Shown: positions 28,134-51,647 of the stretch, in pieces
How positions within the stretch are numbered: the first letter of the stretch is position 1
Layout of the letters: every line of letters starts with the position of its first letter
Origin: Blepharisma stoltei ATCC 30299
Lineage: Eukaryota > Protista > Ciliophora
NCBI GenBank assembly: GCA_965603825.1
Contig: CBFDEM010000011.1
Location: 682,001-746,000, forward strand
Length of the DNA: 64,000 bases
Direction of reading: 5' to 3'
Made by a program: the position numbers and the translations under genes
The notes under the pieces: model-generated
What the model was told of the DNA's origin: nothing
Seen by the model: the letters and a program-made list of their open reading frames with translations, nothing else
The model's database searches: none

Positions 28134-29021
28134 ACGAAATATTTTTCTTTTTTTACACTTTCTGTTTTAGCCTAATCAGGCCCTGCTGTTCAGCCTAAAG
28201 ATTCTGATTTTGTTGCCCCACAAGCAATGACTGACGAAATCAACAGTACCTAAGACTCATGGATTGCTTCTGCTGAGTGCGTTGACCAAATGACAATAGC
28301 TGAAGCCAGACGTAAATTTTCCTTACAACCCAAATCTAGAGAATTTCCAGAATATGATTGGGGTGCGTTCTTAAACTATCTCTTAGTTTCAGCATCGTTT
28401 GATTCAAGAATCCAATGGCCTGAATGTATTCATCCTATTCAAAATGATGATGGATGCTATGGTGGCTGGGCATATGCAGCTATCGAGATCTTTTAGACAG
28501 ACTTTGTATCGCTTCAAATAAAAACATTAATGTTGTGCTGTCTCCTAGGGTATCTAATAGCTTGTGATATCCAATACGATAACGGATGTAGCGGAGGATA
28601 TGACTTAAGCAATATTGAAGTCCTTTAGCATCTTGCATTCCTTTCCATGGATAGTATAGATAGTCCATGCCTTACTAAATGCAACTCAAGAGCATCACTT
28701 CAATTTTATAAAGCTGCGTCTGTTAACACCTATAGCGGTGTATCGTCTATCTAAGCTGCAACCTTGGTAAATGGCCCAGTTGAGACTACTATTTACGAAG
28801 ATTTCTTGACATATAGCGGAGGTATTTACAAGCACACTAAAGGAAATCTTGTAGGAACTTTCAATGTAAAGCTTATAGGATGGGGAAATCAAAGCTGAAC
28901 GAACTATTGGATTGCTGCCAACTGCTGGGGAACTCTTTGGGGTATGAAAGGATATTTCTGAATTGTGTTTGGAGAGTGTGGAATTGATACTCAAGCTGTA
29001 ACTGGATCGCCTAATGTTTAA
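28134..29021 (+). pseudogene. cathepsin B-like unit 1, decayed pseudogene of the inactive clade
   Basis: ATG>ACG, in-frame TAA at 28173 and 28251, several indels. Active-site segment NDDGCYGGW. Confidence 0.9.
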
Positions 29022-29782
29022 TGATAATAGTTTTTATTTATTATATTTTTAAAATCAATATCCGCCCCTTGGAATTGCGTGCTTTCCGATTAATTTTTTT
29101 TTTAATATTTCTATTGCATTGAATTAGAACACTCAATTGATTTGTCTTTATTATAAGGATATAAAGTAATATTTTGGTGGGGAGATCTTCTTTGATTTAA
29201 TAGAGAGTTATTTTTGTGCACTATGATACCGCTCCAAAGGATAAATCCTTCAATAACTGGCAACTTATATTCAGCACACTTTATAAATAAGCATCACGAA
29301 AAAACTCATAATTTGCGAATAAAAGATAAGATACTAGATATATAAATAAATATCTAAAATTATGCGGCTCCTTATTGCATAGAGCTTATATAAACTTCAA
29401 TATAATAAATTAAAATATAAAAAAGGTAAAAAAGGTAAAATTGGAGAGGCATTGACAAGCCCGGTTCCTATTTGAAATTGACATGACTGCTATTTTAGGC
29501 TCACTTAATGTTCCCTGTGAAGACAACGAATTATCATCAATTTAATAAGCTCATTAAAACTAATAAGAAATAAGAACTGAAATCCTTTTTATTTCTTTTC
29601 CACTCAGCCTCAATAAATAATTTGCAAGTTGATTATAGTAACTTTAAATTGGTGCTATTTAACTTGAAAATATAATTATTTCTTTAGTCGTCGCCATTTT
29701 GGTGATAATATAAAAACAAATTCTCCACATTATTGTCGATATTAAAATACAATATTCATGGTGAAATAATTAGAAAAAGAAA

Positions 29783-30703
29783 ATGAGATATCTTTTGTTT
29801 CTATCAATCTTTGTCTTAGGACCTGCTGTCAAGCTTACAGATCCAGATCTGATTGCTATGCAAGAAATGGTTGACGAAATTAATAGAGTTCAAGACTCAT
29901 GAACTGCTTCTACTGACTGGCTCAGCCAAGTAACAATTGCTAAAGCTAAAAGTAAGCTGCTGCTCTCAGAGCCAAAGCCAAGAATATTCCCAGAAAAAGA
30001 CTGGGGTACGCTATTAGATTACCTCTCAATCCCAGCATCTTTCGACTCAAGACAAAAATGGCCAAACTGCATTCATACAGTTCAGAACGATGAAGGATGT
30101 GATGGAGGTTGGGCATATTCAGCTACTGGTGTTCTTGCAGATCGATTTTGCATAGCTACTAATGGCACAGTTAATGTTGTGCTATCTCCGGGATTTCTCC
30201 TAGTTTGCATCATAGATCCCATAATAATGAACTGTAATGGAGGAACTGATGATGCAGCTTGGCAATTTTTGTCAAAAAGTGGAACAGTTACAGAAGAATG
30301 CGTTCCTTATCATATATGAAGTGCAGACGATCCATGCCCTAATCATTGCAATGATCACTCAAAATTTGTATATTACAAAGCTAGCAATGTGAAGAAATAC
30401 TCTAATCCAAGCTCTATGCAAGCTGCAATCTTAGCGGGAGGACCTATTGAAACTCATCTGAAACTTTATGAAGATTTACTGACTTATAAAGGAGGCATTT
30501 ATATACATACAACAGGGAAGCATATAGGTCATACCTCTGTTAAAGTGGTTGGATGGGGCAATCAGGGTGGAACGAACTATTGAATTGCACAAAACGTTTG
30601 GGGAACTCTTTGGGGCCTGAAAGGATATTTTTGGATAGCTTTTGGTCAGTGCGAAGTTGATACAAACGCTATAGCTGGAGATCCTAAAATTAAAAATAAC
30701 TAG
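29783..30703 (+). CDS. cathepsin B-like unit 2, intact non-peptidase homolog
   Basis: 306-aa ORF with TGA=Trp. NDEGCDGGW (Q>D, C>G) and GHTSVK (H>T). Signal peptide is 3 residues shorter than in units 3 and 4. Confidence 0.88.
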
Positions 30704-31296
30704 CTTTCTTCATAAATACTTGATCCTTTAAATCTTCAATTTCGGTTATTTTGAGCTAATTTTAAGTATGTGTGGCACACTCTGCTGATTCATTGATTGC
30801 TAGCCATAACGAAAAGAGTTCATGAGTTTGTTGAGCTCTTGATAATTTTTTTAAAAAATAGCTTATTCAAGTTAAGTTTGAAAAATCAGCTTTCCGGAAA
30901 CTTATGCTATTCCTAAAGTTTGTTTTGATTAAATGTAAAACTTTGAGCTATATGATCATTGCTCAAATAAATTCTTTTAGAAAATTAATCTAAATATTCT
31001 TATTTTAGGCTCACTTAATGTTCCCTGTGAAAATAACGAATTATCATCAATTCCATAAGCTCATTAAGACTAATAAGAATTAAGAACTTAATAGATCGTT
31101 TTTATTTCTTTTTCACTCAGCTTTGAAAATAAGCTCTAGAATTATCTCTTTGCTACTATAACTTTAAATAGGCTCTATTTACTTAAAATATAATTATTTC
31201 TTTACTCGTCATTTTGGTAATAATATAAAATAAATTCTCCACATTATTGTTGATATTAAAATACAATATTCGTGGTGAAATAATTAGAGCAATAAA

Positions 31297-32223
31297 ATGA
31301 AATATCTTTTGTTTCTATCAATCTTTGCCTTAGCTCTTTCAGGGCCTGCTGTCAAGCCTACAGATCCAGAACTAATTGCTATGCAAGAAATGGTTGACGA
31401 AATTAATAGAGTTCAAGACTCATGAACTGCTTCTACTGACTGGCTCAGCCAAGTAACAATTGCTAAAGCTAAAAGTAAGCTGCTGACCTCAGAGCCAAAG
31501 CCAAGAATGTTCCCAGAAAAAGACTGGGGTACGCTATTAGATTACCTCTCAATCCCAGCATCTTTCGACTCAAGACAACAGTGGCCAAACTGCATTCATC
31601 CAGTTCAGAACGATGAAGGATGTGATGGTGGTTGGGCATATTCAGCTACTGGTGTTCTTGCAGATCGATTTTGCATCGCTACTAATGGCACAGTTAATGT
31701 TGTGCTGTCTCCGGGATTTCTCCTAGTTTGCATCATAGATCCAGTAGTAATGAACTGTAATGGAGGAACTGCTGATGCAGCATGGCAATTTTTGGTAGAA
31801 AGTGGAACCGTTACAGAAAAATGCGTTCCTTATCATATATGAAGTGCAGAAGATCCATGCCCTAATCATTGCAATAATCTGTCAAAATTTGTATATTACA
31901 AAGCTGCGTATATGCAGACATACGCTGGACCGAGCTCTATGCAAGCTGCAATCTTAGCAGGAGGACCTATTGAAACTACTCTGAAAGTTTATGAAGATTT
32001 ATTGACTTATAAAGGAGGCATTTATAAGCATGTAACGGGGAAGTATATAGGTATGAGCTCTGTTAAAGTGATTGGATGGGGTAATCAGAATGGAACGAAC
32101 TATTGAATTGCACAAAACGTTTTGGGAACTCTTTGGGGCCAGAAAGGATATCTTTGGATAGCTTTTGGTCAGTGTCAAGTTGATACAGAAGCTGTAGCTG
32201 GAGCTCCTTATCCGATTATCTAA
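31297..32223 (+). CDS. cathepsin B-like unit 3, intact non-peptidase homolog
   Basis: 308-aa ORF with TGA=Trp. NDEGCDGGW, GMSSVK, QNVL. Confidence 0.88.
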
Positions 32224-33067
32224 TAACTTTCTTCATAAATACTTACATCCTTTAAATTTCAATTTCAGTTATTTTGAGCTAATTTAAAAAGTATGTGTGG
32301 CAAAGTCTGCTGATTCATTGATTGCTAGCCATAACGAAGAGTCCTAAAGTTTTTAAGTTCTTGATAATTTTTTTAAAAAATAGTTTATTCAGTTTAACTT
32401 TGAAAAAGCAACTTTTGCTAGAACTTATGCTATTCCTAAAGTTTGTTCTGATTATTGCAAAACTTTGAGCTTTATGATCATTGTTCAAATATCTTCTTTT
32501 AAAAAATTAATCTAAATATTCTTATTTATAGCTATTCATTTATGCTTCGTGCTATAGATTTAATTATTAAATAATAAAAAGCTCATTGGTATATATTGCA
32601 ATTATGTCATTACTCTATTTAATATAATTTGTTTTAGTTCGTATTATTTTTCGATGAAGTGTTTGAATTTTTTTTCACCCTAAAAACATTTTTTGCTTCT
32701 TCTTACATTTCTGACTGAAGAAAAATAGGTGGGAAAACTTCATCGAAGTTTTTTCCGCTTTCCCCCTATTTTAGGCTCACTTAATGTTACTTATTATGAT
32801 ATAGAATAATCATCAATTCCATAAGTTTATTAAACTAATCAGGAATAAGAACTTATTAGATCGTTTTTATTTCTTTTCCACTCAGCCTTTAAAAATAACT
32901 CTAGAACTATCTTTTTGCTACTCAATAACTTTAAATAGGCTCTATTTACTTAAAGTATAGTTATTTCTTTACTCGTCATCATTTTGGTGATAATATAAAA
33001 ACAATTTCTCCACATTATTGTTGATATGAAATTACAATATTCATGGTGAAATAATTAGAACAAGAAA

Positions 33068-33994
33068 ATGAGACATCTTTTGTTCTTATCAATCTTTGTC
33101 TTAGCTCTTTCAGGACCTGCTGTCAAGCCTACAGATCCAGATCTGATTGCTATGCAAGAAATGGTTGACGAAATTAATAGAGTTCAAGACTCATGAACTG
33201 CTTCTACTGACTGGCTCAGCCAAGTGACAATTGCTAAAGCTAAAAGTAAGCTGCTGACCTCAGAACCAAAGCCAAGAATGTTCCCAAAAAAAGACTGGGG
33301 TGCGCTATTAGATTACCTCTCAATCCCAGCATCTTTCGACTCAAGACAGCAGTGGCCAAAGTGCATTCATCCAGTTCAGAACGATGAAGGATGTGATGGT
33401 GGTTGGGCATATTCAGCTACTGGTGTTCTTGCAGATCGATTTTGCATTACTACTAATGGCACAATTGATGTTGTGCTGTCTCCGGGATTTCTCCTTGTTT
33501 GCATACTAGATCCCGTAGAAATGAACTGTAATGGAGGAACTGCTGATGCAGCTTGGCAATTTTTGGTAGAAAGTGGAACCGTTACAGAAAAATGCGTTCC
33601 TTATCATATATGAAGTCTAGACGATCCATGCCCTAATTATTGCAATGATCACTCAAGATTTGTATATTACAAAGCTGCGTATATGCAGACATACGCTGGA
33701 CCGAGCTCTATGCAAGCTGCAATCTTAGCAGGAGGACCTATTGAAACTACTCTGAAAGTTTATGAAGATTTACTGACTTATAAAGGAGGCATTTATAAAC
33801 ATACATTGGGGAAGTATATAGGTATGAGCTCTGTTAAAGTGATTGGATGGGGTAATCAGAATGGAACGAACTATTGAATTGCACAAAACGTTTGGGGAAC
33901 TCTTTGGGGGCAGAAAGGATACCTTTGGATAGCTTTCGGTCAAGTCGAAGTTGATAAAGAAGCTGTAGCTGGAGCTGCTAATCCGAAAATCTAA
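33068..33994 (+). CDS. cathepsin B-like unit 4, intact non-peptidase homolog
   Basis: 308-aa ORF with TGA=Trp. NDEGCDGGW, GMSSVK. Confidence 0.88.
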
Positions 33995-34653
33995 TAACTT
34001 TCTTCATAAATACTTATATCCTTTAAATTTCAATTTCAGTTATTTTGAGCTAATTTAAAAAGTATGTGTGGCAAAGTCTGCTGATTCATTGATTGCTAGC
34101 CATAACGAAGAGTCCTAAAGTTTTTAAGCTCTTGATAATTTTTTTAAAAAATAGTTTATTCAGTTTAACTTTGAAAAAGCAACTTTTGCTAGAACTTATG
34201 CTATTCCTAAAGTGTGTTTTGATTTTGATGTAAAGCTTTGAGCTATATGATTATTGCTCAAATAAGTACGTTAAGACAATTAATCTAAATATTATTTATA
34301 GCCTTATTCTTTTGATAGCTCATTTGCTTGCCTATTTAAATTATCAGAAAGAAGATCCTTAAAAGCATCCAAAAATTTTATAGGGAAATAACTTTGAGAA
34401 TATTTAATTTTTAAACATTAAAATTCGTGAGAAATTTTTTATATTTAATAAAATTAATGAATAACTTTAACAATAGCAATAGTTAAGCCATTTAATTCAG
34501 AATAAATCAAATATTAGTAATCCCTATATTGTAATTACTCAAATAGACGTATTTAGCCCTCATTTATCTCGCCATTCTTTGGTTTAATAAAATTCTCAAT
34601 ATTATTGTTGATGCGGAAATAAAATTTATGTGGTGAAATAATTATAATGCTAA

Positions 34654-35575
34654 ATGAGATATAGGGGAAACCCCTATATCTTTTATTTGTTTCAATTTAT
34701 GCTTTTGCCTTTTCAGGATCTATTCTGCTTGAGATTCTGACATTGTTGCTCCACGAGAAATCGATGACGAAATTAATAGAATTCAAGACTCATGGGCTGT
34801 TTCTTCTGACTGGATTGGCCAAACGAAAGTTGCTGAAGCTAAGCAGAGAGTAGCCCAATGCCAGAGTCTCTAAAATTTCCAAAAAAAGATTGAGGTGCAC
34901 TATTAGATAACCTCTCAAATTCAACATATTTCGAGCATGACCAAATTGCATTTATCCAATTCAAAATGATAATATGTGTTATGCTGACTGGCTTGCGGCT
35001 GCTGATTCTCTTTCAGACAAACTTTGCATTGCTTCAAATAATACTGTTAATGTTGTACTATGGCTAGTAGAACTTGCAAATTTCAATTTCATAACCATAA
35101 ACCCTACATGCAATGGAGGAACACTCGAAATAGCTTGGAGATTTTAACAGAAATACGTAATAACTACAGCTAGCTGCCTCCCTCTTAGTTTGCTTGATAA
35201 ACAATATCCATGCCCTGAAAAATATACCTCATCATCAGAACAATTGAAATCATATAAAGCCGAAAATATTAAAACATACAATGGTTCATTATCTATTAAA
35301 GCTGAAATTTTAAAACGATGGCTTGTTGAGACTATAATGAAAGTTTATCAAGATTTTTTGACTTATAAAGGAGGTATTTATAAGTACACGACGAGGAATC
35401 TTGCAGGATACTTCTGTTAAAGTTATTGGATGGAGTACTCAGAATGGAACAAACTATTGAACTGTGGCTTATGCTTGGGGAACTAATTGAGCTCTGCAAG
35501 GATATTTCGGATTGCTTTTGATAAGTGCGAATTTGGCTTGCAGGCAATAACTGGAGGTTCTGTTTACTCTCATAA
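34654..35575 (+). pseudogene. cathepsin B-like unit 5, decayed pseudogene
   Basis: 17-nt palindromic insertion just after the ATG and multiple small deletions relative to units 6-8. Active-site segment NDNMCYADW. Confidence 0.9.
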
Positions 35576-35879
35576 ATAAATTGATTAATTTTACTATTCA
35601 TCAATTTGTCCATAAATTGGATAATAATGATGAATTTAAATACACTGCTTCATATAATAATTACGGCTAAACAAAATCAAAAGTAATCCGCTTCCTTATT
35701 TTTAAATAGAAAAATATATAAACCCTTAATCTAACCCTAAACTTGCTGTAAAATTTATTTATAATTGTTTATCGTTTTAAAAGAAGATTATAATGAGCCT
35801 AGTCAGAAATTCCGATATTGCAATGATTCGACAAACACATCGAACCCTTTTAGCTCATCATAGTTTTGCTTAATATAAT

Positions 35880-35938
35880 TCACCATATTATTGCTGATAT
35901 GGTGATGAAATGTACAAGGTGAAATAATTATAATAAAA
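35880..35938 (+). promoter_or_regulatory. conserved cathepsin upstream element (TCACCATAT-N8-ATATGGTGA palindrome plus GGTGAAATAA box)
   Basis: Also at 37846-37871 and 39741-39766. Degenerate versions and the GGTGAAATAA box precede most other units. Confidence 0.55.
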
Positions 35939-36855
35939 ATGAGATATCTTTTATTTGCTTCAATTTGTGCTCTAGCCTTTTCAGGACCTATTCTGTTTCA
36001 AGATTCAGACCTTGTTGCCCCACAAGAAATGATTGACGAAATTAATAGAAGTCAAGACTCATGGACTGCTTCTTCTGACTGGGTTGGCAATATGACAGTT
36101 GCTGAAGCCAAGCAGAGAGCAGCTCAAAGGCCAGGGTCTCAAAAATTTTTAAAAAAAAATCGAGGTGCACTATTAGATAGCATCTCAATTCCAGCATCTT
36201 TTGATGCAAGGCAACAATGGCCAAATTGCATTCATCCAATTCAAAATGATGACAATTGTCATGCTGGCTGGGCGTTTGCAGCTGCTGATACTCTTTCAGA
36301 CAGATTTTGCATTGCTTCAAACGGTACCGTAAATGTTGTGCTATCGGCAGCAGAAATTGTACTTTGCCTATTAGAAAAGCCTTCATGCACTTTAGGAACA
36401 ACTGATTTAGCTTGGAATTTTATAAAAGATATGGAACAATGTCAGAAAGATGCATGCCACAAAGCTTGATAGCTACAAGTAAAATATGCCCTACTGTATG
36501 CCACCCCATTGACATTATTATCTATTATAAAGTCAAAAAAATTTACACATTCCAAGGCCAACCAGAAATTCAAGTTGGAATTTTAAAAGGAGGGCCTGTT
36601 GAAGTTAATATGGAAGTTTATCAAGATTTTTTGACTTATAAAGGAGGTATTTATAAGCACACGACGGGGAATCTTGTAGGATACACTTCTGTTAAAGTGA
36701 TTGGATGGGGTAATCAGAACGGAACAAACTACTGAATAGCAGCAAACGCTTGGGGAACTAGTTGGGGTCTGCAAGGATATTTTTGGATTGCTTTCGGTCA
36801 GTGCAATTTTGACGTTGAAGCTATAGCTGGAAAACCTGATTATGAACCTGAATAA
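35939..36855 (+). pseudogene. cathepsin B-like unit 6, non-peptidase homolog with a single frameshift (possible assembly error)
   Basis: NDDNCHAGW, GYTSVK. One base is missing in the A-run near 36424-36429 relative to unit 8. Otherwise open. Confidence 0.7.
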
Positions 36856-37904
36856 TAAGAAGCAAGCTATAAATCCAAAAATAATAATCTTAAAAGAATA
36901 TAAAGCATCTTGCTTTAAATAATAATTCTATAATAAAGGATAAAAATGCGCTATTATCGAGCTTCTTCTCTCGTAGCTAACGAAAGTAAATTTTGCTACT
37001 TGTGAAGTGAGCTATGAAGAGCCTAATTGATTAACACTGATAAGTAGCTTACTTTCATATAAATGCAGATTATTTATCTCTAATCGCTTTCTTTGCTATT
37101 TATTATAAGATTATTTTTAATTCTTTTTTCTACTTTTTCAGGTTTATGCAAGAAATTATCAGTCTTCTTCTAATATTGGAATAATTCTACTTTAAGAACT
37201 AAAAAGAAGTTATGGAATATACTTTATCTACAGAAGAACTTTTCTAATTGTATCTTGTTTCAAAACTTATGAAAAGAAAGGAAGATTTAAAAAAATGTGA
37301 TTTCGTTAGAGCTTGCTATGCAGACGCTAATTTATTAAATACATATAATTTTAAAAATTGAGTTAATAAAATACTTACTTAAGTATGCTTTCTTTATTTA
37401 CTCTACCATTTTAGTGAAAAATTATTGCAATTGATAAATTGTGCTGAAACTAAATAATTTCTTCCTCTTCTAGTTGCTTTTATAAAAACGTCAAAGTTCC
37501 TTGCTGGTAGTAATTTCTTAAAATGGACTCCAATTTATATATTTAAATAAAACACTATTTACTCAATGAAAATTCACCATTTTGTAGGCGAGATAAAAAT
37601 AAAACAATCGTGGTGAAATAATATAAATTAAACTATAACTTTAAGAGTATTCTAGGCTATATTTTAGAAAAAACCGAGGTGCCCTCAGGCCCTTAATCTA
37701 ACCCTAAACTTGCTGTAAATTTTATTTATAATTGTTTAATGTTTTAAAAGAATATTATAATGAGCCTAGTCAGAAATCCGATATTGCAATGACTCGACAA
37801 GCACATCGAGCCCTTTTAGCTCATCATAGTTTTGTTTAATATAATTCACCATATTATTGTTGATATGGTGATGAAATGTACAAGGTGAAATAATTATAAT
37901 AAAA

Positions 37905-38819
37905 ATGAGATATCTTTTATTTGCTTCAATTTGTGCTTTAGCCTTTTCAGGACCTATTCTGTTTCAAGATTCAGACCTTGTTGCCCCACAAGAAATGATT
38001 GACGAAATTAATAGAGTTCAAGACTCATGGACTGCTTCTTCTGACTGGGTTGGCAATATGACAGTTGCTGAAGCCAAGCAGAGAGTAGCTCCAACAATAG
38101 GGTCTCAAAAATTTTCAAACAACGATTGAGGTGAACTATTAAATTACCTCTCATTTCCAGCAACTTTCGATTCGAGGCAACAATGGCCAAATTGCATTCA
38201 TCCAATTCAAAATGATAGCGATTGCCATGCTGGCTGGGCGTTTGCAGCTGCTGATTCTCTTTCAGACAGATTTTGCATTGCTTCAAACGGTACCGTAAAT
38301 AATGAGCTATCGGCAGCATTTATTGTACTTTGCAGTCTAGCTTCTCCTTCATGCATTGAAGGAACAACTGATTCAGCTTGGAACTTTTTAAAGCAATTTG
38401 GAATACCTAAAGCAAGTTGCACTCCTCTCAGCTTGATAGGCAGTAGTCAATGCCCTAGTTTGTGCCACCCCCTTGCTCCATTTACCTTATTTAAAGTCAA
38501 AAAAATTTACACATTCCAAGGCCAACCAGAAATTCAAGCTGGAATTTTAACAGGAGGGCCAGTTGAAGTTAATATGGAAGTTTATCAAGATTTTTTGACT
38601 TATAAAGGAGGTGTTTATAAGCATACGACGGGGAAACTTATAGGATACACTTCTGTTAAAGTGATTGGATGGGGTAATCAGAACGGAACAAACTACTGAA
38701 TAGCAGCAAACGCTTGGGGAACTAGTTGGGGTCTGCAAGGATATTTTTGGATTGCTTTCGGCCAGTGCAAATTTGACGTAGAAGCTATTGCTGGAAACCC
38801 CGATTATAAAGCTCAATAA
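37905..38819 (+). CDS. cathepsin B-like unit 7, intact non-peptidase homolog
   Basis: 304-aa ORF with TGA=Trp. NDSDCHAGW, GYTSVK, ANAW. Confidence 0.88.
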
Positions 38820-39799
38820 TAAGAAGTAAGCTATAAATCCAAAAATAATAATCTTAAAATTTAAAGAATATAAAGCATTTTGCTTTAAAATAATAATTCT
38901 ATAATAAAGGATAAATATTCGGTATTATCGAGCTTCTGCTCTCGTAGCTAATGAAAGAATATTTTGCTACTTGTGAAGTGAGCTATGAAGAGCTTAATTG
39001 ATTTATACTGATAAGTAGCTTACTTTCATATAAGTGTAGATTATTTATCTCTAATGCACTTTCTTTGCTATTTATTATAAAATTATTTTCAATTCTTTTT
39101 TTCAATCTTAGTTATATATAAATATTTGTAATAACTGATAAAATGGGTTTAAGTTTATCAAAATAAGATAAATGAATAATATGAATGTTTAAAGCTTACT
39201 TTTCAGGTTTACTAAAAGAGATGATTAACCTTCTTCTAATATTTTTGAAGCTCTTGTTTCAAAATTTAAAAAATGTGATCCCATTAGGGCTTGCTAAGTA
39301 TGCTTTCTTTATTTATTCTTCCTCTTCTACTTGCTTTTATAAAACGTCAAAGTTCCTTGCTAGTAGTAATTTCTTAAAATGGACTCGAATTTATACATTT
39401 ACACAAAACACTATTTACTAAATGAATATTCACCATTTTATAGGCGATATAAAATAAAACAATCGTGATGAAATAATAGGTTATTTGTGTAAATATTATA
39501 ATGCTTAGATTTTTAAGTACTACTGTAACTGTTACTTTAGAGTATTCTGAACTATATTTTCGAAAAAACCAAGGTGCCCTCAGGCCCTTAATCTAACCCT
39601 AAACTTGCTGTAAAATTTATTTATAATTGTTTATCGTTTTAAAAGAATATTATAATGAGCCTAGTCAGAAATCCGATATTGTAATGACTCGACAAGCACA
39701 TCGAACCCTTTTAGCTCATCATAGTTTTGCTCAATATAATTCACCATATTATTGTTGATATGGTGATGAAATGTACAAGGTGAAATAATTATAATAAAA

Positions 39800-40717
39800 A
39801 TGAGATATCTTTTATTTGTTTCAATTTGTGCTTTAGCCTTTTCAGGACCTATTCTGTTTCAAGATTCAGACCTTGTTGCCCCACAAGAAATGATTGACGA
39901 AATTAATAGAGTTCAAGACTCATGGACTGCTTCTTCTGACTGGGTTGGCAATATGACAGTTGCTGAAGCCAAGCAGAGAGTAGCTCCAACAATAGGGTCT
40001 CAAAAATTTTTAAAAAAAAATTGAGGTGCACTATTAGATAACCTCTCAGTTCCAGCATCTTTTGACGCAAGGCAACAATGGCCAAATTGCATTCATCCAA
40101 TTCAAAATGATGGCAATTGTCATGCTGGCTGGGCGTTTGCAGCTGCTGATACTCTTTCAGACAGATTTTGCATTGCTTCAAACGGTACCGTAAATGTTGT
40201 GCTATCGGCAGCAGAAATTGTACTTTGCAGTCTAGAAAAACCTTCATGCATTGGAGGAACAACTGATGTAGCTTGGACTTTTATACAGCAATATGGAACA
40301 AATTCAGAAAGATGCACGCCACAAAGCTTGATAGCTACAAGTAAAGTATGCCCTACTGTATGCCACCCCATTGACATTATTATCTATTATAAAGTCAAAA
40401 AAATTTACACATTCCAAGGCCAACCAGAAATTCAAGCTGGAATTTTATCAGGAGGGCCTGTTGAAGTTAATATGGAAGTTTATCAAGATTTTTTGACTTA
40501 TAAAGGAGGTGTTTATAAGCACACGACGGGGAATCTTGTAGGATACACTTCTGTTAAAGTGATTGGATGGGGTAATCAGAACGGAACAAACTACTGAATA
40601 GCAGCAAACGCTTGGGGAACTAGTTGGGGTCTGCAAGGATATTTTTGGATTGCTTTCGGTCAGTGCAATTTTGACGTAGAAGCTATAGCTGGAAAACCTG
40701 ATTATAAAGCTCAATAA
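39800..40717 (+). CDS. cathepsin B-like unit 8, intact non-peptidase homolog
   Basis: 305-aa ORF with TGA=Trp. NDGNCHAGW, GYTSVK. Confidence 0.88.
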
Positions 40718-41569
40718 TAAGAAGTAAGCTATAAATCCAAAAATAATAATCTTAAAATTTAAAGAATACAAAGCATTTTGCTTTAAATAATAATTCTATA
40801 ATAAAGCTTCTTCTCTCGTAGCTAACGAAAGTAAATTTTGTTACTTGTAAAGTGCGCTATGAAGAGCCTAATTGATTTGCACTGATAAGTAGCATACTTT
40901 CATCAAAATGCAGATTATTTATCTCTAATGCACTTTCTTTGCTATTTATTATAAGATTATTTTCAATTCTTTTTTTCAATCTTAATAATATATAAATATT
41001 TCAATTTCTGATAAAATGGGTTTAAGTTTATCAAAAAATAAAAGAATAATAAGAATGCTTGAAGCTTACTTTTTCATGTTTTATAAAAGAGATTATTAGC
41101 CTTCTTCTAATATTAGAATAATTTCTACTTTAAGAAAGTTATAGCATATACTTCATCTGCAGAAGAACTTTCCTAATTATATCGCAGTCTTCATTTTTGG
41201 AGTAATTGTTTCCAAGCTTCTGAAAAGCAAGGAAGATTTAAAAAATGTAATTCAGTTAGAGCTTGCTATGTAAACGCTAATTTATTAAACACATATGATT
41301 TTAAAAATTGGCTTAATAAAATACTTACTTAAGTATGCTTTCTTTATTTATTCTACCATTTTAGTTAAAAATTATAAAAATTGATAAATTGTGCTTAAAC
41401 TAAATAATTTCTTCCTCTTCTAGTTGCTTTTATAAAACGTCAAAATCCCTGCTGTTAGTAATTTTTAAAATGGACTCCAATTTATATATTTATACAAAAC
41501 ACTATTTACTAAATGAAAACTCACCATTTTGTAGGCGAGATAAAAATAAAACAATCGTGGTGAAGTAAA

Positions 41570-42514
41570 ATGAAATATCTTTTGTTTGTATCTCTTTTTG
41601 TGTTAACCCTTTCAGGGCCTGCTGTTGAGCCTAAAGACTCAGATCTTGTTGCCCCACAGGAAATGATTGATGAAATCAACCGAGTCCAAGACTTATGAAT
41701 TGCGTCATCTGAGTGGGTTGGAAATATGACATTTGCTCAAGCCAAACTTTACGCATCTTCAAAATTGGAAGCTAAAAAATTTCCAGAAAAAGACTGGGGT
41801 GCACTTTTAGACTACCTCTCAATTCCGGCATCTTTCGATTCAAGAACGCAATGGCCTTACTGCACAAAACCCTTATGGTACGGTGATGATTGTAATGCCG
41901 GCTGAGCATTTGCAGCAGCCGAAACTATGACAGACAGGTTTTGCATTGCAACAAAAGGAGCATTCAATATCACATTTTCCCCTCTTTATCTAATAATTTG
42001 TGATGTTACCTTGCCCGAACTAGGGTGCTTGGGAGGAACCGCTGAAAATTGCTGGGATTATATGAGGACTACAGGGATCACTTCAATAAAATGCTTTCCT
42101 TATAATCCTGGTGACTGGAATCAATACTGCCCTTATGATGAATGCCGTTGGGGAACAGAGATTACTCTTTACAAGACTTTGTCTGTGAATACTTTCACTA
42201 GCCCATCATCTATTCAAGCAGAAATATTGCAAAATGGCCCAATTGAAGCTACAATGACTGTTTATGCAGATTTCCAAGCATATAAAGGAGGTATTTATAA
42301 GCATACCACAGGGGGTCTTGTAGGGTACACCAGCGTGAAAATTATTGGGTGGGGAAACCAAAGCGGAACGAATTATTGGATTGCAGGCACATCTTGGGGA
42401 TCTACTTGGGGTATGAAAGGATACTTTAATATTGCTTTTGGACAATGCGGCATCGATCGCGCTGGTGTAGCTGGCCCTCCTGATCTTTCAAATATTCCAA
42501 CCATTAAAATTTAA
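41570..42514 (+). CDS. cathepsin B-like unit 9, intact non-peptidase homolog (all catalytic residues lost)
   Basis: 314-aa ORF. YGDDCNAGW (W encoded by TGA), GYTSVK, AGTSW (N>T). Confidence 0.88.
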
Positions 42515-43809
42515 TGATCTAAGCATTCATTTATAAAAATATACATTTTAATACTTTAAGCAGTTCACAAAGAAAAAATTCTTTTCATTTAATAAAATAT
42601 TGCTAATTTAAAATTTAAAGATTAAAAATGAATTAATCATTTTTAATTTTATTATTCCAGGCTTTAAAATTTTCTTCAAAAAGTTTAAATAAAAGAAATA
42701 AAAAACTCTCTATAATCAATTATTCTTAATCTTACCAATAATTTTATATATACTGAAAGCTTTAATATTATTACTTATTTAGCTTTTAATATTTTTTTAA
42801 TTAATGTCTTGAACATTTGTAATATTGTATAACATTTTATAGTAAACATATTTAATTAAGTTTATTTTATTGTTTATATGGCCTATTTAATTTTTTATTA
42901 ACTTTCTTCTATTTAATTTTATTCGATGTTTGATTTCCCAGTCTCATCGATATATTATCAATATGATGAAAAATTAATTTTCAAAAAATCCCCTAAAAGC
43001 AAATGATTTTTACTCATAAATCAGAGCTAATGCATGTGGCTAAAATTTTTAATAAATTGCCCCGAGAAAATGTATTACTATTATAAAACGCAAAGCAAAT
43101 GGCATAGAGTTAATATTCCTTGGATTCAACCGACTATATTATAGCAAAATCTTAATGATTATTTCATTCTTTATTCATCTCTGAATTTAAATAAATTAGA
43201 AATTCAGCTTACTACTTCAACTTCTCCCATTTCTCTAATAATACTCTGTTTGTATACATTCTGTTTTTTAGTTTCTTTCTTTTCAAACATCAGTTTATTA
43301 AGCCCTTTGCACCGCTTGCTATTTTCCCTTCATTCACTCCAAGGAGAATAAAAAAATTTCTTATTCAGAGAGAGTTTAATTTTTTGATGAAAATTTTTTG
43401 GTGGTTCTGAAACTTTTCAATTTGAAGTAACCTGAAAAAGACTAAGATAACAATTAATCTATCTAATCCAATATTTTTGAAGCTCTTGCTTCAAAATTTA
43501 AAAAATGTGATGCCATTAGAGCTTGCTCTGTAAACTCTAGCTACAAATGATTTTAAAAATTGACTTAATAAATACTTACTTAAATATGCTTTCTTTATTT
43601 ATTCTACCATTTTTAGATAAAAATTATAAAAATTATTTACAACTAAATAATCTCTTCTAGCTGCTTTTATAAAAACGTCAATGTTCCATTCTGGTAGTAA
43701 TTTCTTAAAATGAACTCCAATTTATATATTTATACAAAACACTATTTACTAAATGAAAACTCACCATTTTGTAGGCGAGATAAAAATAAAACAATCGTGG
43801 TGAAATAAA

Positions 43810-44754
43810 ATGAAATATCTTTTGTTTGTATCTCTTTATGTTTTAGCCCTTTCAGGGCCTGCTGTTGAGCCTAAAGACTCAGATCTTGTTGCTCCACAGG
43901 AAATGATTGATGAAATCAACCGAGTCCAAGACTTATGAATTGCGTCATCTGAGTGGGTTGGAAATATGACATTTGCTCAAGCCAAACTTTACGCATCTTC
44001 AAAATTGGAAGCTAAAAAATTTCCAGAAAAAGACTGGGGTGCACTTTTAGACTACCTCTCAATTCCAGCATCTTTCGATTCAAGAACGCAATGGCCAAAC
44101 TGCACAAAACCCTTATGGGACGGTCAAAATTGTAATGGCGGCTGGGCATTTGCTGCAGCCGAAACTATGACAGACAGGTTTTGCATTGCAACAAAAGGAG
44201 CATTCAATATCACATTTTCCCCTCTTTATCTAATAATTTGTGATGACACCATGTCCGAAAAAATGTGCTATGGAGGAAGCGCTGAAAGTTGTTGGGATTA
44301 TATGAGGACAACAGGAATTACTTCAATAGAATGCTTTCCTTATCATCCTGGTGACTGAGATCAATGGTGCCCTGATGATACATGCCGTTGGGGAACAAAG
44401 ATTACTCTATACAAGACTAAATCTGTGAAAACTTTCACTAGCCCATCGTCTATTCAAGCAGAAATATTGCAAAATGGCCCAATTGAAGCTACAATGACTG
44501 TTTATGCAGATTTCCAAGCATATAAAGGAGGTATTTATAAGCATACCACAGGGAAACTTGTAGGGTACACCAGCGTGAAAATTATTGGGTGGGGAAACCA
44601 AAGCGGAACGAATTATTGGATTGCAGGCAACTCTTGGGGATCTACTTGGGGTATGCAAGGATACTTTAATATTGCTTTTGGACAGTGCGGCATCGATAGT
44701 GCTGGTGTAGCTGGCCCTCCTGATCTTTCAAATATTCCAGCCAGTAAAATTTAA
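43810..44754 (+). CDS. cathepsin B-like unit 10, intact non-peptidase homolog
   Basis: 314-aa ORF with TGA=Trp. DGQNCNGGW, GYTSVK, AGNSW. Confidence 0.88.
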
Positions 44755-45938
44755 TAATCTAAGCACGCATCTATAAAAATACACATTCTAATACTATAAG
44801 CAGTTCACAAAGAAAAAATTCTTTTCATTTAATAAAATATTGCTAATTTAATATTAAAAGACTAAAAAATGAATTAACCATTTTTAATTTTATTATTCCA
44901 GGCTTTAAAATTTTCTTCAAAAAGTTTAAATAAAAGAGATAAAAAGCTCTCTATAATCAATTATTCTTAATCTTGCCAATAGCTTTATATATGCTGAAAG
45001 CTTTAATATTATTACTTATTTAGATTTTAATATTTTTTCAACTAATGTCTTGAACATTTGTAATATTGTATAACATTTTATAGTAAACATATTTAATTAA
45101 GTTTATTTTATTGTTTATATGGCCTATTTAATTTTTTATTAACTTTCTTCTATTTAATTTTATTCGATGTTTGATTTCCCAGTCTCATCGATATATTATC
45201 AATATTGCTCAATGCAAGCTTTAATGCCTATGGCTAAAAATTTTGGTAAATTGCCCCGAGAAAATGCATTACTATTATAAAACGCAAAGCTAATGGCATA
45301 GAGCTAATATTCCTTGAACTCAACCGACTATATTATAGCACAATCTTAATGATTATTTCATTCTTTATTTCATATCTTAATTTTAAATAAATTATAAACT
45401 GAGTTTGCTACTTCAACTTCTCCCATTTCTCTAATAATACTCTTCTTGCGTACATTCTATTTTTTAGTTTCTTTATTTTCAAATATCAATTATTAAGCCC
45501 TTTGCACCGTTTGCTATTTTCCGTTCAGAGACTCCAAGGAGAATAAAAATAATTTCTTTATTCAGAGAGAGTTAATGTTTTGATGAAAATTTTTTTGTGG
45601 TTACCTGAAGAAGACTTTATTTCTTTCTATAATTTTTACTTTTTTATTGGGTTAAATTCCAAAATTATCACAATGCATTTTGTCTTAGCACATGCTTTTT
45701 AATTTCTTCTTCCATTTTTAGACAAAAATATAATGATTATTGTAGCTAATAAATCATCTAAAAATAAGTGAGTATATCTCTGATACTTATAGTTCAAATA
45801 AGATATCAAAATAGGTTATTGTTCGTAATTACAAAAATAATTCTGATTATCTATACTCACTTCAAAATAATTTCTTCAATAAAAATTCGCCATATTACAG
45901 GCGATATGGAGATAAAATCCTTGAGGCGAAATAATAAA

Positions 45939-46862
45939 ATGAAATATCTTTCATTTATATCACTCTTTGCCCTAGTTCTATCAGGGCCTACAGTTCAGCT
46001 TAAAGACTCAGATCTTGCTATCCCACAAGAAATGATTGATGAAATCAACAGAGTCCAAGACTCCTGGATTGCATCTTCTAAGTGGGTTGGTAACATGACA
46101 ATTGCTGAAGCCAAGCATAAAGCATCCACAATATCTAAACCTCGACCATTTCCAGCAAAAGAAATTGGTGCATTATCAGACTACCTTTCAATTCCAGCCT
46201 CCTTCGATGCAAGAACAAAATGGCCAAACTGCATTCACCCAATCCGTAACGATGATTTATGCGATGCTGGCTGGGCGTTTGGAGCTACTGAAACTCTGTC
46301 TGACAGATTTTGCATTGCTTCAAATGGCAAAATTAACATTGTTTTGTCACCACTATATCTGATAGTATGTGATATTTCATATGACGATAGATGCAGCTTC
46401 GGTAGTCCTGATTCTGTTTGGAATTTCATGAAAAATTATGGAGTACCTACAGAATCATGCCTTCCTTATAATGTATTAGATACAGATGAAATGTGCCCTA
46501 ATTCTTGCTGGTTAGGAAACGATTTCCAATTCTATAAGGCTGCGACTGTGAACTCATTCAATGGTACAGCAGCGATCCAGGCTGAAATATTAGCAAATGG
46601 GCCAGTTGAAGTTATTTTTACCATGTATCAAGATTTGTTGTCCTATAAGGGAGGCATTTATAAGCATACAACAGGTGATTCTTTAGGAACTACCTGTGTG
46701 AAGGTAGTCGGGTGGGGAAATCAAAGTGGAACTAATTACTGGATTGCTGCTAACTCTTGGGGAACTCGTTGGGGTTTACAAGGATACTTTTGGATTGCTT
46801 TTGGGGAGGGCGGGATTGGTAAACAAGCTGTAGCTGGGACTCCATATATTAAAGGCCTATAG
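45939..46862 (+). CDS. cathepsin B-like unit 11, intact non-peptidase homolog
   Basis: True start is MKYLSF at 45939 (signal peptide), not 45768. NDDLCDAGW, GTTCVK, ANSW. Confidence 0.9.
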   Translation: MKYLSFISLFALVLSGPTVQLKDSDLAIPQEMIDEINRVQDSWIASSKWVGNMTIAEAKHKASTISKPRPFPAKEIGALSDYLSIPASFDARTKWPNCIHPIRNDDLCDAGWAFGATETLSDRFCIASNGKINIVLSPLYLIVCDISYDDRCSFGSPDSVWNFMKNYGVPTESCLPYNVLDTDEMCPNSCWLGNDFQFYKAATVNSFNGTAAIQAEILANGPVEVIFTMYQDLLSYKGGIYKHTTGDSLGTTCVKVVGWGNQSGTNYWIAANSWGTRWGLQGYFWIAFGEGGIGKQAVAGTPYIKGL

Positions 46863-47685: not shown

Positions 47686-48585
47686 ATGAAATATTTTGCT
47701 TTTGCAGCTCTCATTGTTTTAGCCTTGTCAGGACCTGCAATTGAACTTAAAGACTCAGACCTTGTATGTCCTCAAGAAATGATTGACGAAATCAACAGCA
47801 TCCAAGATTCATGGACTGCATCTTCTGAATGGGTTGGCCAAATGACCGTTGCCGAAGCCAAGCTTAAAGCTTCTTCAATCTCAAGACCTAGAGAATTCCC
47901 AGAAAAAGATTGGGGTGCACTAATAAACTACTTCTCGGCTCCAGCTTCATTCGATTCAAGACAACAGTGGCCTGGATGCGTTCATCCAATCCTTAACCAA
48001 GAGCAGTGCGGATCCTGCTGGGCATTTGGAGCAAGTGAAGCTCTCTCAGATAGACTTTGCATTGCTACTAACGGAACAGTCAATGTCACTTTGTCCCCAC
48101 AATATCTTGTATCTTGCGATTCTCAAAACTACGGATGCAACGGTGGTTACGCAGACCTTGCCTGGAGATTCATGAAAGATACCGGAGTTCCAACATACTC
48201 ATGTGTTCCTTATATTGCAGCAGACGGAACTTGCCCTACCAAATGCGCTGATGGATCTGCCCTTCAATTCTACAAGGCTACATCTGTAAACACATACAGT
48301 GGCCCATCATCTATCCAAGCTGCAATTTTGGCAGGAGGCCCAGTTGAAGTTACCTTCCAAGTTTACAAAGACTTCATGTCATACTCTGGTGGTATCTACA
48401 AGCACACCAAGGGAGAATTTGTCGGAAACCACTGCGTCAAAATCATCGGATGGGGAAACCAAAGTGGAACCAACTACTGGATTGTTGCTAACTCTTGGGG
48501 AACTTCTTGGGGTCTTCAAGGATTCTTCTGGATTGCCTTCGGACAATGCGGAATTGATAGTCAAGGTGTAGCTGGAAGCGCTTAA
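47686..48585 (+). CDS. CTSB: cathepsin B-like cysteine protease, unit 12 (catalytically complete)
   Basis: Signal peptide, QEQCGSCWAF, GNHCVK, ANSW. No occluding loop. Confidence 0.93.
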   Translation: MKYFAFAALIVLALSGPAIELKDSDLVCPQEMIDEINSIQDSWTASSEWVGQMTVAEAKLKASSISRPREFPEKDWGALINYFSAPASFDSRQQWPGCVHPILNQEQCGSCWAFGASEALSDRLCIATNGTVNVTLSPQYLVSCDSQNYGCNGGYADLAWRFMKDTGVPTYSCVPYIAADGTCPTKCADGSALQFYKATSVNTYSGPSSIQAAILAGGPVEVTFQVYKDFMSYSGGIYKHTKGEFVGNHCVKIIGWGNQSGTNYWIVANSWGTSWGLQGFFWIAFGQCGIDSQGVAGSA

Positions 48586-48866: not shown

Positions 48867-49793
48867 ATGAAATATCTTGTCATTGCTTCACTTATTGCTC
48901 TTGCAATCTCAGGACCCACAGTCACGTTTAAAAACGCATCCCCAGCTTTAAAAGACTCAGATCTTGTTGCACCGCAAGAAATGATTGATCTTATTAATCA
49001 AAGCCAAGACTCTTGGACTGCATCAGCCGATTGGGTCGGCCAAATGACTATTGGAGATGCCAAAAGCTATGCATCTGCTAGTGGAGAGCCAAGAAGTTTC
49101 CCAGAAAAAGACTGGGGTGCACTTTTAGACAGCGTCACACCTCCATCTTCTTTTGATTCAAGACAGCAATGGCCAAACTGTATTCATCCAATTCTTAACC
49201 AAGAACAATGCGGATCATGCTGGGCATTTGGCGCTACAGAAGCTCTTTCAGACAGACTTTGTATAGCTTCAAAAGGCTCAATCAATGTTGTTCTGTCTCC
49301 TCAGTACCTTCTTGAATGTGATAAAGAAAACTTCGCTTGCAATGGAGGAATTGCAGATTTGGCTTGGCTCTGGATGAAGGACCATGGTGTTCCTACCTAC
49401 TCTTGCGTTCCTTACTTAGGACAAGACTCAACCTGCCCAACTGCTTGCTCTAATGGATCCCAATTGCAAGTTTATAAGGCTTCATCTGTAAACACATACA
49501 GTGGACCATCATCAATGCAAGCTGCTATTCTTGCTGGAGGCCCAATTGAAGTCACTTTCCAAGTTTATCAAGATTTCATGACTTACTCTGGAGGAATTTA
49601 CAAGCACACTACTGGAAACTTTTTAGGAAACCACTGCGTTAAGGTTGTTGGCTGGGGGACACAGAATGGAACCAACTACTGGGTTGTGGCTAACTCTTGG
49701 GGAACTTCCTGGGGTATTCAAGGATTCTTCAATATTGCCTTCGGACAATGCGGAATTGATAGTCAAGCTGTGGCAGGAACTCCTCTAGTTTAG
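48867..49793 (+). CDS. CTSB: cathepsin B-like cysteine protease, unit 13 (catalytically complete)
   Basis: Start MKYLVI at 48867. QEQCGSCWAF, GNHCVK, ANSW. Confidence 0.93.
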   Translation: MKYLVIASLIALAISGPTVTFKNASPALKDSDLVAPQEMIDLINQSQDSWTASADWVGQMTIGDAKSYASASGEPRSFPEKDWGALLDSVTPPSSFDSRQQWPNCIHPILNQEQCGSCWAFGATEALSDRLCIASKGSINVVLSPQYLLECDKENFACNGGIADLAWLWMKDHGVPTYSCVPYLGQDSTCPTACSNGSQLQVYKASSVNTYSGPSSMQAAILAGGPIEVTFQVYQDFMTYSGGIYKHTTGNFLGNHCVKVVGWGTQNGTNYWVVANSWGTSWGIQGFFNIAFGQCGIDSQAVAGTPLV

Positions 49794-50000
49794 ATATTTA
49801 ATATCAATTTGCCTTTAATATGTCTTTTTGTTCTCTGTTATTAAATTTGATAACAGTATTCAAATTTAGCACTTAATAATAAGGGTATTGGCAATTTTCT
49901 ATTTAATATAGATGCAAAAATTTAACAGATAAAATAAATTGTCTTTCTACCTGCATTAATCCGATTAATTAAGAAGATAAGTTATGGGGAAACAATAAAT

Positions 50001-50906
50001 ATGAAAAACATCATTTTGCTAGGCTTTGTCTTAGCTGCATTTGCAAGTCCAGCTTTTAGACTTAGAGATTCTGACCTTGTGATGACACAAGAGCAAATAG
50101 ACCGCATCAATCAAAGCCAAGATTTATGGACAGCCTCCTCTGATTGGGTTGGTGCCATGACAATTGGAGAAGCCAGACAATACGCCTCAGCCGAAATTAT
50201 CTACAACCACTTCCCAGAAAAACATTGGGGAAAGCTCTTAGACCACTTGCAAGTCCCATCTGCTTTTGACGCTAGACAAAAATGGCCTTCTTGCATTCAT
50301 CCAATCCTTAATCAAGGAGATTGCGGCTCTTGTTGGGCTTTTGGAGCAAGTGAAGCTCTTTCAGACAGACTCTGCATTTTTTCAAACAGCACAATAAATG
50401 TTGTCCTTTCCCCTCAATATCTGGTTAATTGTGACAGTGTAAGCTATGGCTGTGGCGGTGGATATGCCGTTTATGCTTGGGATTTCATGCAATCTAATGG
50501 CATCCCAACCCAAACTTGTACCCCATATGCTGCTGTAAATCAAGTTTGCGTTAATAAATGCTCCAATGGATCTACTATGAGATATTATAAGGCTGCATCT
50601 GTGAGTACTTTCAGCTCACCCGCATCAATTCAGGCAGAGGTTCTGCAAAATGGCCCAATAGAAGTTTCTTTCCAGGTTTACCAAGATTTCTATGCATATA
50701 CAAGTGGTGTTTATAAGCACACCAATGGACAATTTGTTGGCAATCACTCAGTCAAAATTATTGGATGGGGAGTTCAAGGTCAAACTAATTATTGGATTGT
50801 TGCTAACTCTTGGGGTGCTACCTGGGGTATGAATGGATTCTTCTGGATTGCTTTTGGAGAGTGTGGAATCGATAGTAATGGTGTTGCTGGACTTCCTGCA
50901 GTCTAA
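50001..50906 (+). CDS. CTSB: cathepsin B-like cysteine protease, unit 14 (catalytically complete)
   Basis: QGDCGSCWAF, GNHSVK, ANSW. Confidence 0.93.
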   Translation: MKNIILLGFVLAAFASPAFRLRDSDLVMTQEQIDRINQSQDLWTASSDWVGAMTIGEARQYASAEIIYNHFPEKHWGKLLDHLQVPSAFDARQKWPSCIHPILNQGDCGSCWAFGASEALSDRLCIFSNSTINVVLSPQYLVNCDSVSYGCGGGYAVYAWDFMQSNGIPTQTCTPYAAVNQVCVNKCSNGSTMRYYKAASVSTFSSPASIQAEVLQNGPIEVSFQVYQDFYAYTSGVYKHTNGQFVGNHSVKIIGWGVQGQTNYWIVANSWGATWGMNGFFWIAFGECGIDSNGVAGLPAV

Positions 50907-51087: not shown

Positions 51088-51274
51088 ATGGCACAAAAAG
51101 AACCCCCACCGTTTATTTGCTTGATATCAGAAAGCGAAAGTGGGACTGATAAATCAAAAAGCCAAAGCTCATCATTAAGATCTAAACAAAAGTAAAGTGC
51201 TACATCAACTTCTAAGAAAAACAAAAAATCAGAATCAAAACCCAAGAAAAGCAAAAGTTCTAAATCAGTCTCTA
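51088..51274 (+). pseudogene. truncated 5' duplicate of the zinc-finger gene at 54430
   Basis: Near-identical to 54430-54616, with a premature TAA at 51193. Confidence 0.88.
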
Positions 51275-51647
51275 GGACAAGACTCAACCTGCCCAACTGC
51301 TTGCTCTAATGGATCCCAATTGCAAGTTTATAAGGCTTCATCTGTAAACACATACAGTGGACCATCATCAATGCAAGCTGCTATTCTTGCTGGAGGCCCA
51401 ATTGAAGTCACTTTCCAAGTTTATCAAGATTTCATGACTTACTCTGGAGGAATTTACAAGCACACTACTGGAAACTTTTTAGGAAACCACTGCGTTAAGG
51501 TTGTTGGCTGGGGGACACAGAATGGAACCAACTACTGGGTTGTGGCTAACTCTTGGAAACTTCCTTGGTATTCAAGGATTCTTCAATATTGCCTTCGGAC
51601 AATGCGGAATTGATAGTCAAGCTGTGGCAGGAATTCCTCTAGTTTAG
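51273..51647 (+). pseudogene. cathepsin B-like unit 15: 3' half duplicate of unit 13 fused to the zinc-finger fragment
   Basis: Near-identical to 49417-49793, with two 1-nt deletions near 51555-51570. Confidence 0.9.

Follow-up and report, generated by a model that had tools for sequence, protein, structure and literature searches.

The window analysed here is a stretch of 64,000 nucleotides from the ciliate Blepharisma stoltei ATCC 30299 (contig CBFDEM010000011.1, positions 682,001 to 746,000 of the forward strand), corresponding to C11:682001-746000 in the searched assembly of the somatic genome (41.46 Mb, 64 contigs). It contains a tandem array of cathepsin-B-like genes of the papain (C1A) family, eight of which are intact and encode proteins devoid of the catalytic residues. 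The data support a single ancestral inactivation, followed by amplification; purifying selection on the protein scaffold is firmly indicated, and the array very probably encodes functional, non-catalytic binding proteins.

Organization of the array

By comparing reading frames under different genetic codes, long open reading frames (ORFs) were seen to run across the window when UGA is read as tryptophan; genetic code tables 1 and 6 were rejected, since both break the ORFs. A tblastn search of the window, with the active gene a13 as query, identified 17 cathepsin-B-like units between positions 28134 and 54248, all on the forward strand. The limits proposed in the preliminary description, 28134-46862, hold for the disarmed units; the whole array reaches 54248, adding three active genes and three broken copies. 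Eight units (u2, u3, u4 and u7-u11), already described as full-length, were confirmed as intact ORFs of 304 to 314 codons with an ATG start and a TAA or TAG stop. Broken copies were translated by placing an X at every break. Residues are given in papain numbering throughout.

u1, 28134..29021, + strand: broken member of the disarmed clade, lacking an ATG, with stops and frameshifts; Gly25, Phe159; groups with the intact gene at C11:576894
u2, 29783..30703, + strand: intact pseudoprotease, 306 aa, subfamily u2-u4; Asp19, Gly25 (codon at 30107), Thr159
u3, 31297..32223, + strand: intact pseudoprotease, 308 aa; Gly25, Ser159
u4, 33068..33994, + strand: intact pseudoprotease, 308 aa; Gly25, Ser159; covered by RNA-like contigs of four runs, 0 mismatches
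u5, 34653..35580 (end approximate), + strand: decayed copy with several stops and frameshifts and many indels; covered by RNA-like contigs
u6, 35939..36855, + strand: young copy of u8 (95% DNA identity) with a single 1-nt deletion near 36425
u7, 37905..38819, + strand: intact pseudoprotease, 304 aa, subfamily u6-u8; B. japonicum orthologue P0002; RNA-like contig coverage
u8, 39800..40717, + strand: intact pseudoprotease, 305 aa
u9, 41570..42514, + strand: intact pseudoprotease, 314 aa, subfamily u9-u10; Gly19, Gly25, Thr159; Asn175 lost as well
u10, 43810..44754, + strand: intact pseudoprotease, 314 aa; orthologue P0012 (MMETSP)
u11, 45939..46862, + strand: intact pseudoprotease, 307 aa, modelled with a procathepsin B fold; orthologue P0006/L051, 75% identity
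a12, 47686..48585, + strand: cathepsin-B-like, Gln, Cys, His and Asn intact; sister of the disarmed clade
a13, 48867..49793, + strand: cathepsin-B-like, catalytic residues intact
a14, 50001..50906, + strand: cathepsin-B-like, catalytic residues intact
u15, 51273..51647, + strand: 3' fragment of a13, 98.7% identical to it and carrying two deletions of 1 nt
u16, 51874..52777, + strand: frameshifted duplicate of a14; separate Cys25-to-Asp change, His kept
u17, 53345..54248, + strand: frameshifted duplicate of a14; Cys25-to-Ala, His kept

Active site and fold

Cys25 is replaced by Gly in all eight intact units, Gln19 by Asp or Gly (the latter in u9 and u10), and His159 by Thr or, in u3 and u4, by Ser; Phe occurs at this position only in the broken u1. 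None of the eight thus retains the Cys25/His159 dyad and Gln19 of an active C1A peptidase. All eleven active-site strings quoted in the preliminary description for units 1-11 were found, and its account of the lost nucleophile and of the substitutions at the catalytic His and at the oxyanion Gln proved correct. Asn175 is retained in seven of the eight, being Thr in u9, and position 23 of the intact disarmed units is Asp, Asn or His. Gly25 is conserved through different codons (GGT, GGC and GGA) in the eight intact units and in the u11 orthologue Bj11.

Matches to Peptidase_C1 (PF00112) reached E-values of 1e-48 for u11 and 4e-43 for u7. The AlphaFold model of u11, built on a 120-sequence alignment, has a predicted local distance difference test score (pLDDT) of 93 and a predicted TM score of 0.90; its best Foldseek matches are procathepsins B (E 3e-30, TM 0.84-0.86, about 290 residues including the propeptide). 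As the alignment consists mostly of active enzymes, the model is evidence that the sequence is compatible with this fold, but not for the exact geometry of the cleft. The intact units are 50-61% identical to a12 and a13. They have only a short stub of the occluding loop, lacking the His110-His111 pair of cathepsin B proper, and the disarmed units contain 8-10 cysteines, versus 10-12 in the active neighbours, so that, contrary to the preliminary description, some of the structural cysteines have been lost, though most are kept.

An N-terminal hydrophobic stretch is present in the eight intact units, as in their active neighbours, and is the sole basis for calling the proteins secreted; 1-4 N-glycan sequons are found per disarmed protein. 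Membrane anchoring was rejected: a C-terminal hydrophobic tail is missing, and an internal hydrophobic stretch occurs only in u2-u4, inside the folded domain. Judging from sequence, the intact disarmed proteins are predicted to be unable to cut peptides. With a modelled fold that is kept, replaced catalytic residues and an ORF under purifying selection, the intact units appear to fit the definition of C1A non-peptidase homologues.

Origin and distribution

Trees were built from 89 sequences and, with more care, from 38 sequences after removal of the catalytic columns; u5 was left out as too broken. The disarmed units u1-u11 (minus u5) fall in one clade, with support 100/99 after the catalytic columns were dropped, where they are joined by the intact copy at C11:576894 (P0007) and by three proteins that come from other data sets. 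The gene a12 is sister to this clade (97/92), and a13 branches next (96/93). Five subfamilies are found: u1 with the C11:576894 copy, u2-u4, u6-u8, u9-u10 and u11. They are about 50-60% identical to one another, with open frames; the preliminary description's count of at least four clearly diverged subfamilies becomes five.

P0002, from B. japonicum, falls with u6-u8, P0006, from a 964-base JGI contig, with u11, and P0012, from MMETSP, with u9-u10; P0006 and P0012 were taken as Blepharisma sequences because of their position in the tree. For two of the subfamilies an orthologue exists in B. japonicum, and for a third it is probable. Since orthologues are found inside u6-u8, u11 and u9-u10, loss of the dyad and the main duplications predate the split between B. 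stoltei and B. japonicum. The clade and the B. japonicum orthologue agree with the earlier proposal that one inactivation was followed by amplification. Two protein searches returned no member of the clade outside Blepharisma in their top 120 hits, and a scan of metagenome DNA gave no close member; three Stentor matches are active enzymes, placed elsewhere in the tree.

A second site of the disarmed clade lies at C11:576894-579781 (L038:4895-5809 and ~6900-7800), about 130 kb from the array, and contains one intact gene (Asp25, Val159) and one broken u1-like copy.

Loss of the dyad is recurrent in the B. stoltei genome, where disarmed C1A genes are common: 13 of 40 C1A domains, including those of cathepsin-L-like and double-domain genes, lack it, the 40 being a biased sample of examined loci and not a full census of the genome, which contains about 100 C1A matches. 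Single intact cathepsin-B-like genes, with Ser25 and either Ala or Leu at 159, were found on contig 43 (L033:4464-5366) and contig 14 (L037, C14:524907-525785), with a branch omega (dN/dS) of about 0.13. A common origin of these genes with the array was disfavoured but not rejected in the approximately unbiased (AU) test (p=0.068), and the losses were probably separate.

Further disarmed genes were observed elsewhere. Tandem double-domain cathepsin-Z-like genes at C20:912000-921500 (L087) lack the Cys/His pair in six of the seven domains read, and in cathepsin-L-like genes (L018, L020, L027 and L041) Cys25 is changed to Gly, Asp or Ser. Disarmed cathepsin-B-like proteins on separate branches of the tree are also encoded by ciliate-like metagenome contigs (P0199, P0201, P0202, P0208, P0214, P0215, P0243 and P0244; L084, L085); the two checked are single genes.

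Selection on the disarmed genes

Selection was analyzed by a GY94 codon model written for the UGA=Trp code. The branch-class omega is 0.35 inside the disarmed clade versus 0.19 for the active paralogues; within the clade, omega=1 is rejected (twice the log-likelihood difference, 2dL, 216), and 57% of the sites are assigned by M1a to an omega of 0.13. By region, the disarmed clade gives 0.27 for the propeptide, 0.29 for the core, 0.66 for the cleft-lining residues and 1.33 for the occluding-loop stub (p=0.045 against 1), and the active genes give 0.26, 0.12, 0.25 and 0.44, respectively. A core pN/pS (ratio of nonsynonymous to synonymous differences per site) of 0.29 was also obtained from the u11/Bj11 orthologue pair. 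The amplified copies had been supposed to be under selection, and purifying selection, with a core value well below 1, is what these results show.

The rim of the cleft behaves differently from the rest. In the young pairs u3/u4, u7/u8 and u9/u10 it is enriched in replacement changes (Fisher p=0.006). When the comparison is restricted to the middle segment, chosen in order to avoid the gene-converted ends, rim pN is 0.208 versus a local pS of 0.108 over the three pairs (p=0.005); of the replacement changes between u9 and u10 in this segment, 21 fall at the rim and 4 outside it. M2a was preferred over M1a with p=0.02, one codon having a posterior above 0.95. Diversifying selection at the cleft rim is therefore likely, and moderately supported.

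Transcription

Sequences of the array were looked for in four putative RNA runs. The runs contain 0.34-0.36 of the words of region 37800-47000, about half of which is coding. Their contigs, when aligned to region 33000-38900, cover u4 and most of u7 without mismatch, as well as the broken u5, and leave the spacers empty; u6-specific sequence was absent from them. Overall, contigs were found on u4, u7 and much of u8-u11. Coverage of genes without spacers is the pattern of transcripts. Contig depth in these runs is unsuited to ranking genes.

Gamone 1

Gamone 1 (blepharmone) is the mating pheromone that mating type I secretes and that induces pairing. The array was considered as a possible gamone 1 locus, u8 being 305 aa long, and this was rejected. 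An exact match to a published primer (PMC10892320) was found on contig 28, beside a single-copy ORF of 305 aa, 96% identical to pre-progamone 1:

gamone 1 gene, C28:483989-484903 (L031:564-1478), - strand

Known sequences of the gamone 1 family, amplified by the Gm primers, are 67-100% identical and have no UGA codons (PMC10892320), unlike seven of the eight intact array units. Similarity between gamone 1 and the array, as searched by BLAST, hidden Markov models (HMMs) against shuffles, Pfam and hhalign, was negative or weak, with a profile-profile (hhalign) probability of 49%.

A profile search of metagenome and run assemblies retrieved 18 distant relatives of gamone 1 (21-33% identity), and the AlphaFold model built with them has a pLDDT of 81.7. 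Its top 50 Foldseek hits are all C1A proteins (best E 3.6e-7), and it superimposes on cathepsin B with Z 15.3 and a root mean square deviation of 3.5 over 218 residues; ESM language-model features score 0.93 to C1 clusters. These two approaches are the sole link between gamone 1 and C1. In the motif alignment, a Ser precedes the conserved Trp and no His is found at the second site. The model suggests that gamone 1 is built on a papain fold without catalytic residues. Blepharisma would then already use one disarmed papain fold as a signal, which is no ground for regarding the array as a family of pheromones; gamone 1 and the array would have separate origins, gamone 1 being the older. No paper was found stating that gamone 1 has a papain fold, and the 2024 gamone paper (PMC10892320) does not mention proteases. 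The fold model may offer a structural handle on the gamone 1 receptor, as well as on those regions of the pheromone that were mapped as species-specific in that work. Its species-variable regions are 132-151 and 287-298.

Other features of the array

Duplicated blocks of 1.4-2.2 kb take in the spacers, pairwise identity is patchy, and conversion tracts are visible; unequal crossing-over and gene conversion are inferred from these features. The units u16 and u17 lost Cys25 separately. Tiny introns were rejected as a cause of the frameshifts, since the lesions of u6 and u15-u17 are deletions, not insertions, relative to intact paralogues. Positions 49417-54621 are occupied by segmental duplications, 1.4-1.9 kb long and 92-94% identical, which comprise the a14 copies and the 5' part of a gene at 54367-55200; several single-base deletions in this region could be assembly errors. 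In u5, a 17-nt insertion directly after the ATG (34657-34681) forms a perfect palindrome with 10-bp arms and TA at its ends. The array is flanked by housekeeping-type genes (coatomer beta, CTP synthase, kinases).

The motif TGGYGA/TCRCCA, frequently present as two inverted copies, is found within 100 nt upstream of units 1-13, together with a related TGGGGAAA motif. Motifs of this type precede 17 of 36 C1A genes versus 5 of 37 other genes, and may represent a shared promoter element. UGA-encoded Trp occurs two or three times in each of u2-u10 and never in the active cathepsins or in u11 (11/11 TGG); this difference may be due to a lower level of expression or to a relaxed codon bias.

Comparison with known families

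By analogy, the closest known case would be that of the SMIPP-Cs of Sarcoptes scabiei, a monophyletic, multicopy family of C1A homologues whose catalytic site is mutated; they are expressed, and their amplification preceded a lineage split (PMC5956821, PMC7815109). They are localised in the gut and act as binders, of calcium and of polymerising fibrin (PMC5956821, PMC7815109). Both are multicopy, monophyletic, disarmed C1A families, and the analogy suggests binding for the array as well. SMIPP-Cs differ in having a Der p 1-like origin and in belonging to a parasite, where they act on the host, whereas the ancestor of the array is a short cathepsin-B-like gene in a ciliate that lives free. In our tree, made without SMIPP-C sequences, the array clade nests among Blepharisma cathepsin-B-like genes and not in a Der p 1/Sar s 1-derived clade.

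SPE31 and soybean P34 belong to the papain family, carry Gly in place of the catalytic Cys and have a cleft that binds ligands; they differ from the array in being plant seed proteins of the cathepsin-L-like branch, with few copies and an independent origin. SPE31 (PDB 2b1m/2b1n) was returned as a match in our searches. With respect to the protist cathepsin-B-like peptidases with a short or absent occluding loop, such as a12-a14, the array has the same fold, propeptide and most disulfides, and differs by the loss of Gln19, Cys25 and His159 and by longer, hypervariable rim loops. Testin, TIN-ag, Plasmodium SERA5 and silicatein are C1A homologues that lack the catalytic Cys and have other roles; they carry Ser at position 25, several of them with His, whereas the array has Gly25 and no His. 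To our knowledge, expanded disarmed papain-type families are known mainly from parasites and seeds, in host-directed or defence roles. Gamone 1 resembles the array in length (about 305 aa), signal peptide, N-glycan sites and a modelled papain fold without Cys/His, and differs in being single-copy, on contig 28, with neither sequence similarity to the array nor a match to a cathepsin-B-type propeptide.

By these comparisons, the array is classified as a putative family of C1A non-peptidase homologues, distinct from active C1A peptidases, from cathepsin B proper and from gamone 1. It joins an already known class of C1A pseudoproteases; literature searches found no earlier paper on a disarmed-cathepsin array in Blepharisma.

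Discussion

The history of the array may be reconstructed as follows. A local cathepsin-B-like gene of the a12/a13 lineage was duplicated. One copy was deprived of Gln19, Cys25 and His159 in a single inactivation, older than the split of B. stoltei from B. japonicum, and later multiplied in tandem by what appears to be unequal crossing-over, with patchy gene conversion. The eight intact genes would encode folded, glycosylatable pre-pro-proteins, presumably entering the secretory pathway. With Gly25 and Thr or Ser at 159, the former groove would stand open; it would often be acidic (Asp19, with Asp, Asn or His at 23). Divergence of the rim loops (58-68 and the occluding-loop stub) between paralogues could provide paralogue-specific, non-catalytic binding. 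The non-proteolytic role originally proposed is consistent with diversification of the cleft rim as far as binding is concerned; its signalling variant gained no support from our tests.

The proteins may work where their active siblings do, in the lysosome or food vacuole or in what this discharges. Their candidate job would be to hold prey-derived molecules, or to absorb protease inhibitors of the prey, sparing the active cathepsins. The signal peptide leaves lysosome and medium undivided, and the propeptide and the upstream motif are shared with the active siblings; for these reasons a digestive or prey-facing setting is ranked first, as a tentative assignment with somewhat less than even chances.

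Several points weigh against this interpretation. The four runs belong to a single 2022 study, and their identification as RNA is a guess; transcription alone proves little, because the broken u5 appears to be transcribed too. The rim partition was drawn with the alignment already in view, the same loops are the fastest parts of active cathepsins as well, and M2a places only one codon past the 0.95 posterior. An inflated pN/pS may also result from gene conversion or from multi-base changes, and the former distorts the tree as well. The upstream motif is short, and its enrichment is confounded with the shared ancestry of the genes that carry it. As omega exceeds that of the active paralogues (0.35 vs 0.19) and 3 of 11 units are broken, constraint has been relaxed and turnover is real.

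One rival explanation is plain decay, in which instability of the tandem array multiplied a dead copy, the intact ORFs being young or homogenised by conversion. The broken units (u1, u5, u6 and u15-u17), the visible conversion tracts and the apparent transcription of a broken copy point this way. Decay is largely refuted, and very improbable, given five subfamilies that keep open frames at about 50-60% identity, an omega far below 1, open-frame orthologues in other Blepharisma data sets and a Gly25 held through synonymous change; the preliminary description had named missing transcripts and a core dN/dS near 1 as its marks, and RNA-like contigs and a core value of 0.29 were found instead. It is most unlikely that the proteins are changed enzymes, in which the remodelled site (Asp19, Asp/Asn/His23, Thr159) performs another chemistry. 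Asp19, Gly25 and Thr159 do recur over subfamilies and species, and silicatein performs other chemistry with Ser replacing Cys; Gly25, however, is no nucleophile, the His is gone, and the replacements vary by subfamily (Gly19 in u9/u10, Ser159 in u3/u4), a variation incompatible with one catalytic mechanism common to all.

Two further explanations accept that the proteins are functional. They might be signals, disarmed papain-fold glycoproteins released into the medium and read by cell-surface receptors like gamone 1, with paralogues serving as cues for kin, density, encystment or later mating steps. The modelled fold of gamone 1 from the same cell, the close size (304-314 aa vs 305 aa), the signal peptide and glycan sequons of the array, and the further unknown pair-formation factors inferred by Kobayashi et al. 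(PMC10892320) are all in keeping with such a role. We consider it unlikely: the array is neither gamone 1 nor near it, without BLAST or HMM similarity and with a profile-profile probability of 49%, the gamone family has distant relatives of its own, and the array retains a conserved cathepsin-B propeptide and adjoins active cathepsins. Internal regulators of the cell's own cathepsins (by propeptide donation or trapping, competition for endogenous cystatins or zymogen escort), or matrix cargo of extrusive granules or of the cyst wall, would be consistent with a propeptide as constrained as that of the active genes (0.27 vs 0.26), with upstream motifs in common with adjoining active paralogues, and with a genome whose C1A content leaves much to regulate. 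This too has a low probability, the excess of amino acid changes at the rim of young copies being better suited to changing outside partners than to self partners.

According to a broader view, proteases of the papain fold would have been converted more than once in Blepharisma into proteins of extracellular recognition, with gamone 1 as the old, far-diverged product and the array as a younger, diversifying repertoire of released signals or recognition factors, for instance candidate factors of pair formation or kin recognition. We regard this as doubtful; if true, a single genome would display how a digestive enzyme turns into a pheromone. Read as a family of non-catalytic binders, the array places such a conversion in a free-living protist, with the active parent gene adjacent, orthologues in a sister species and selection acting on the rim of the old active site, and would offer a clean case for the study of an enzyme becoming a binder.

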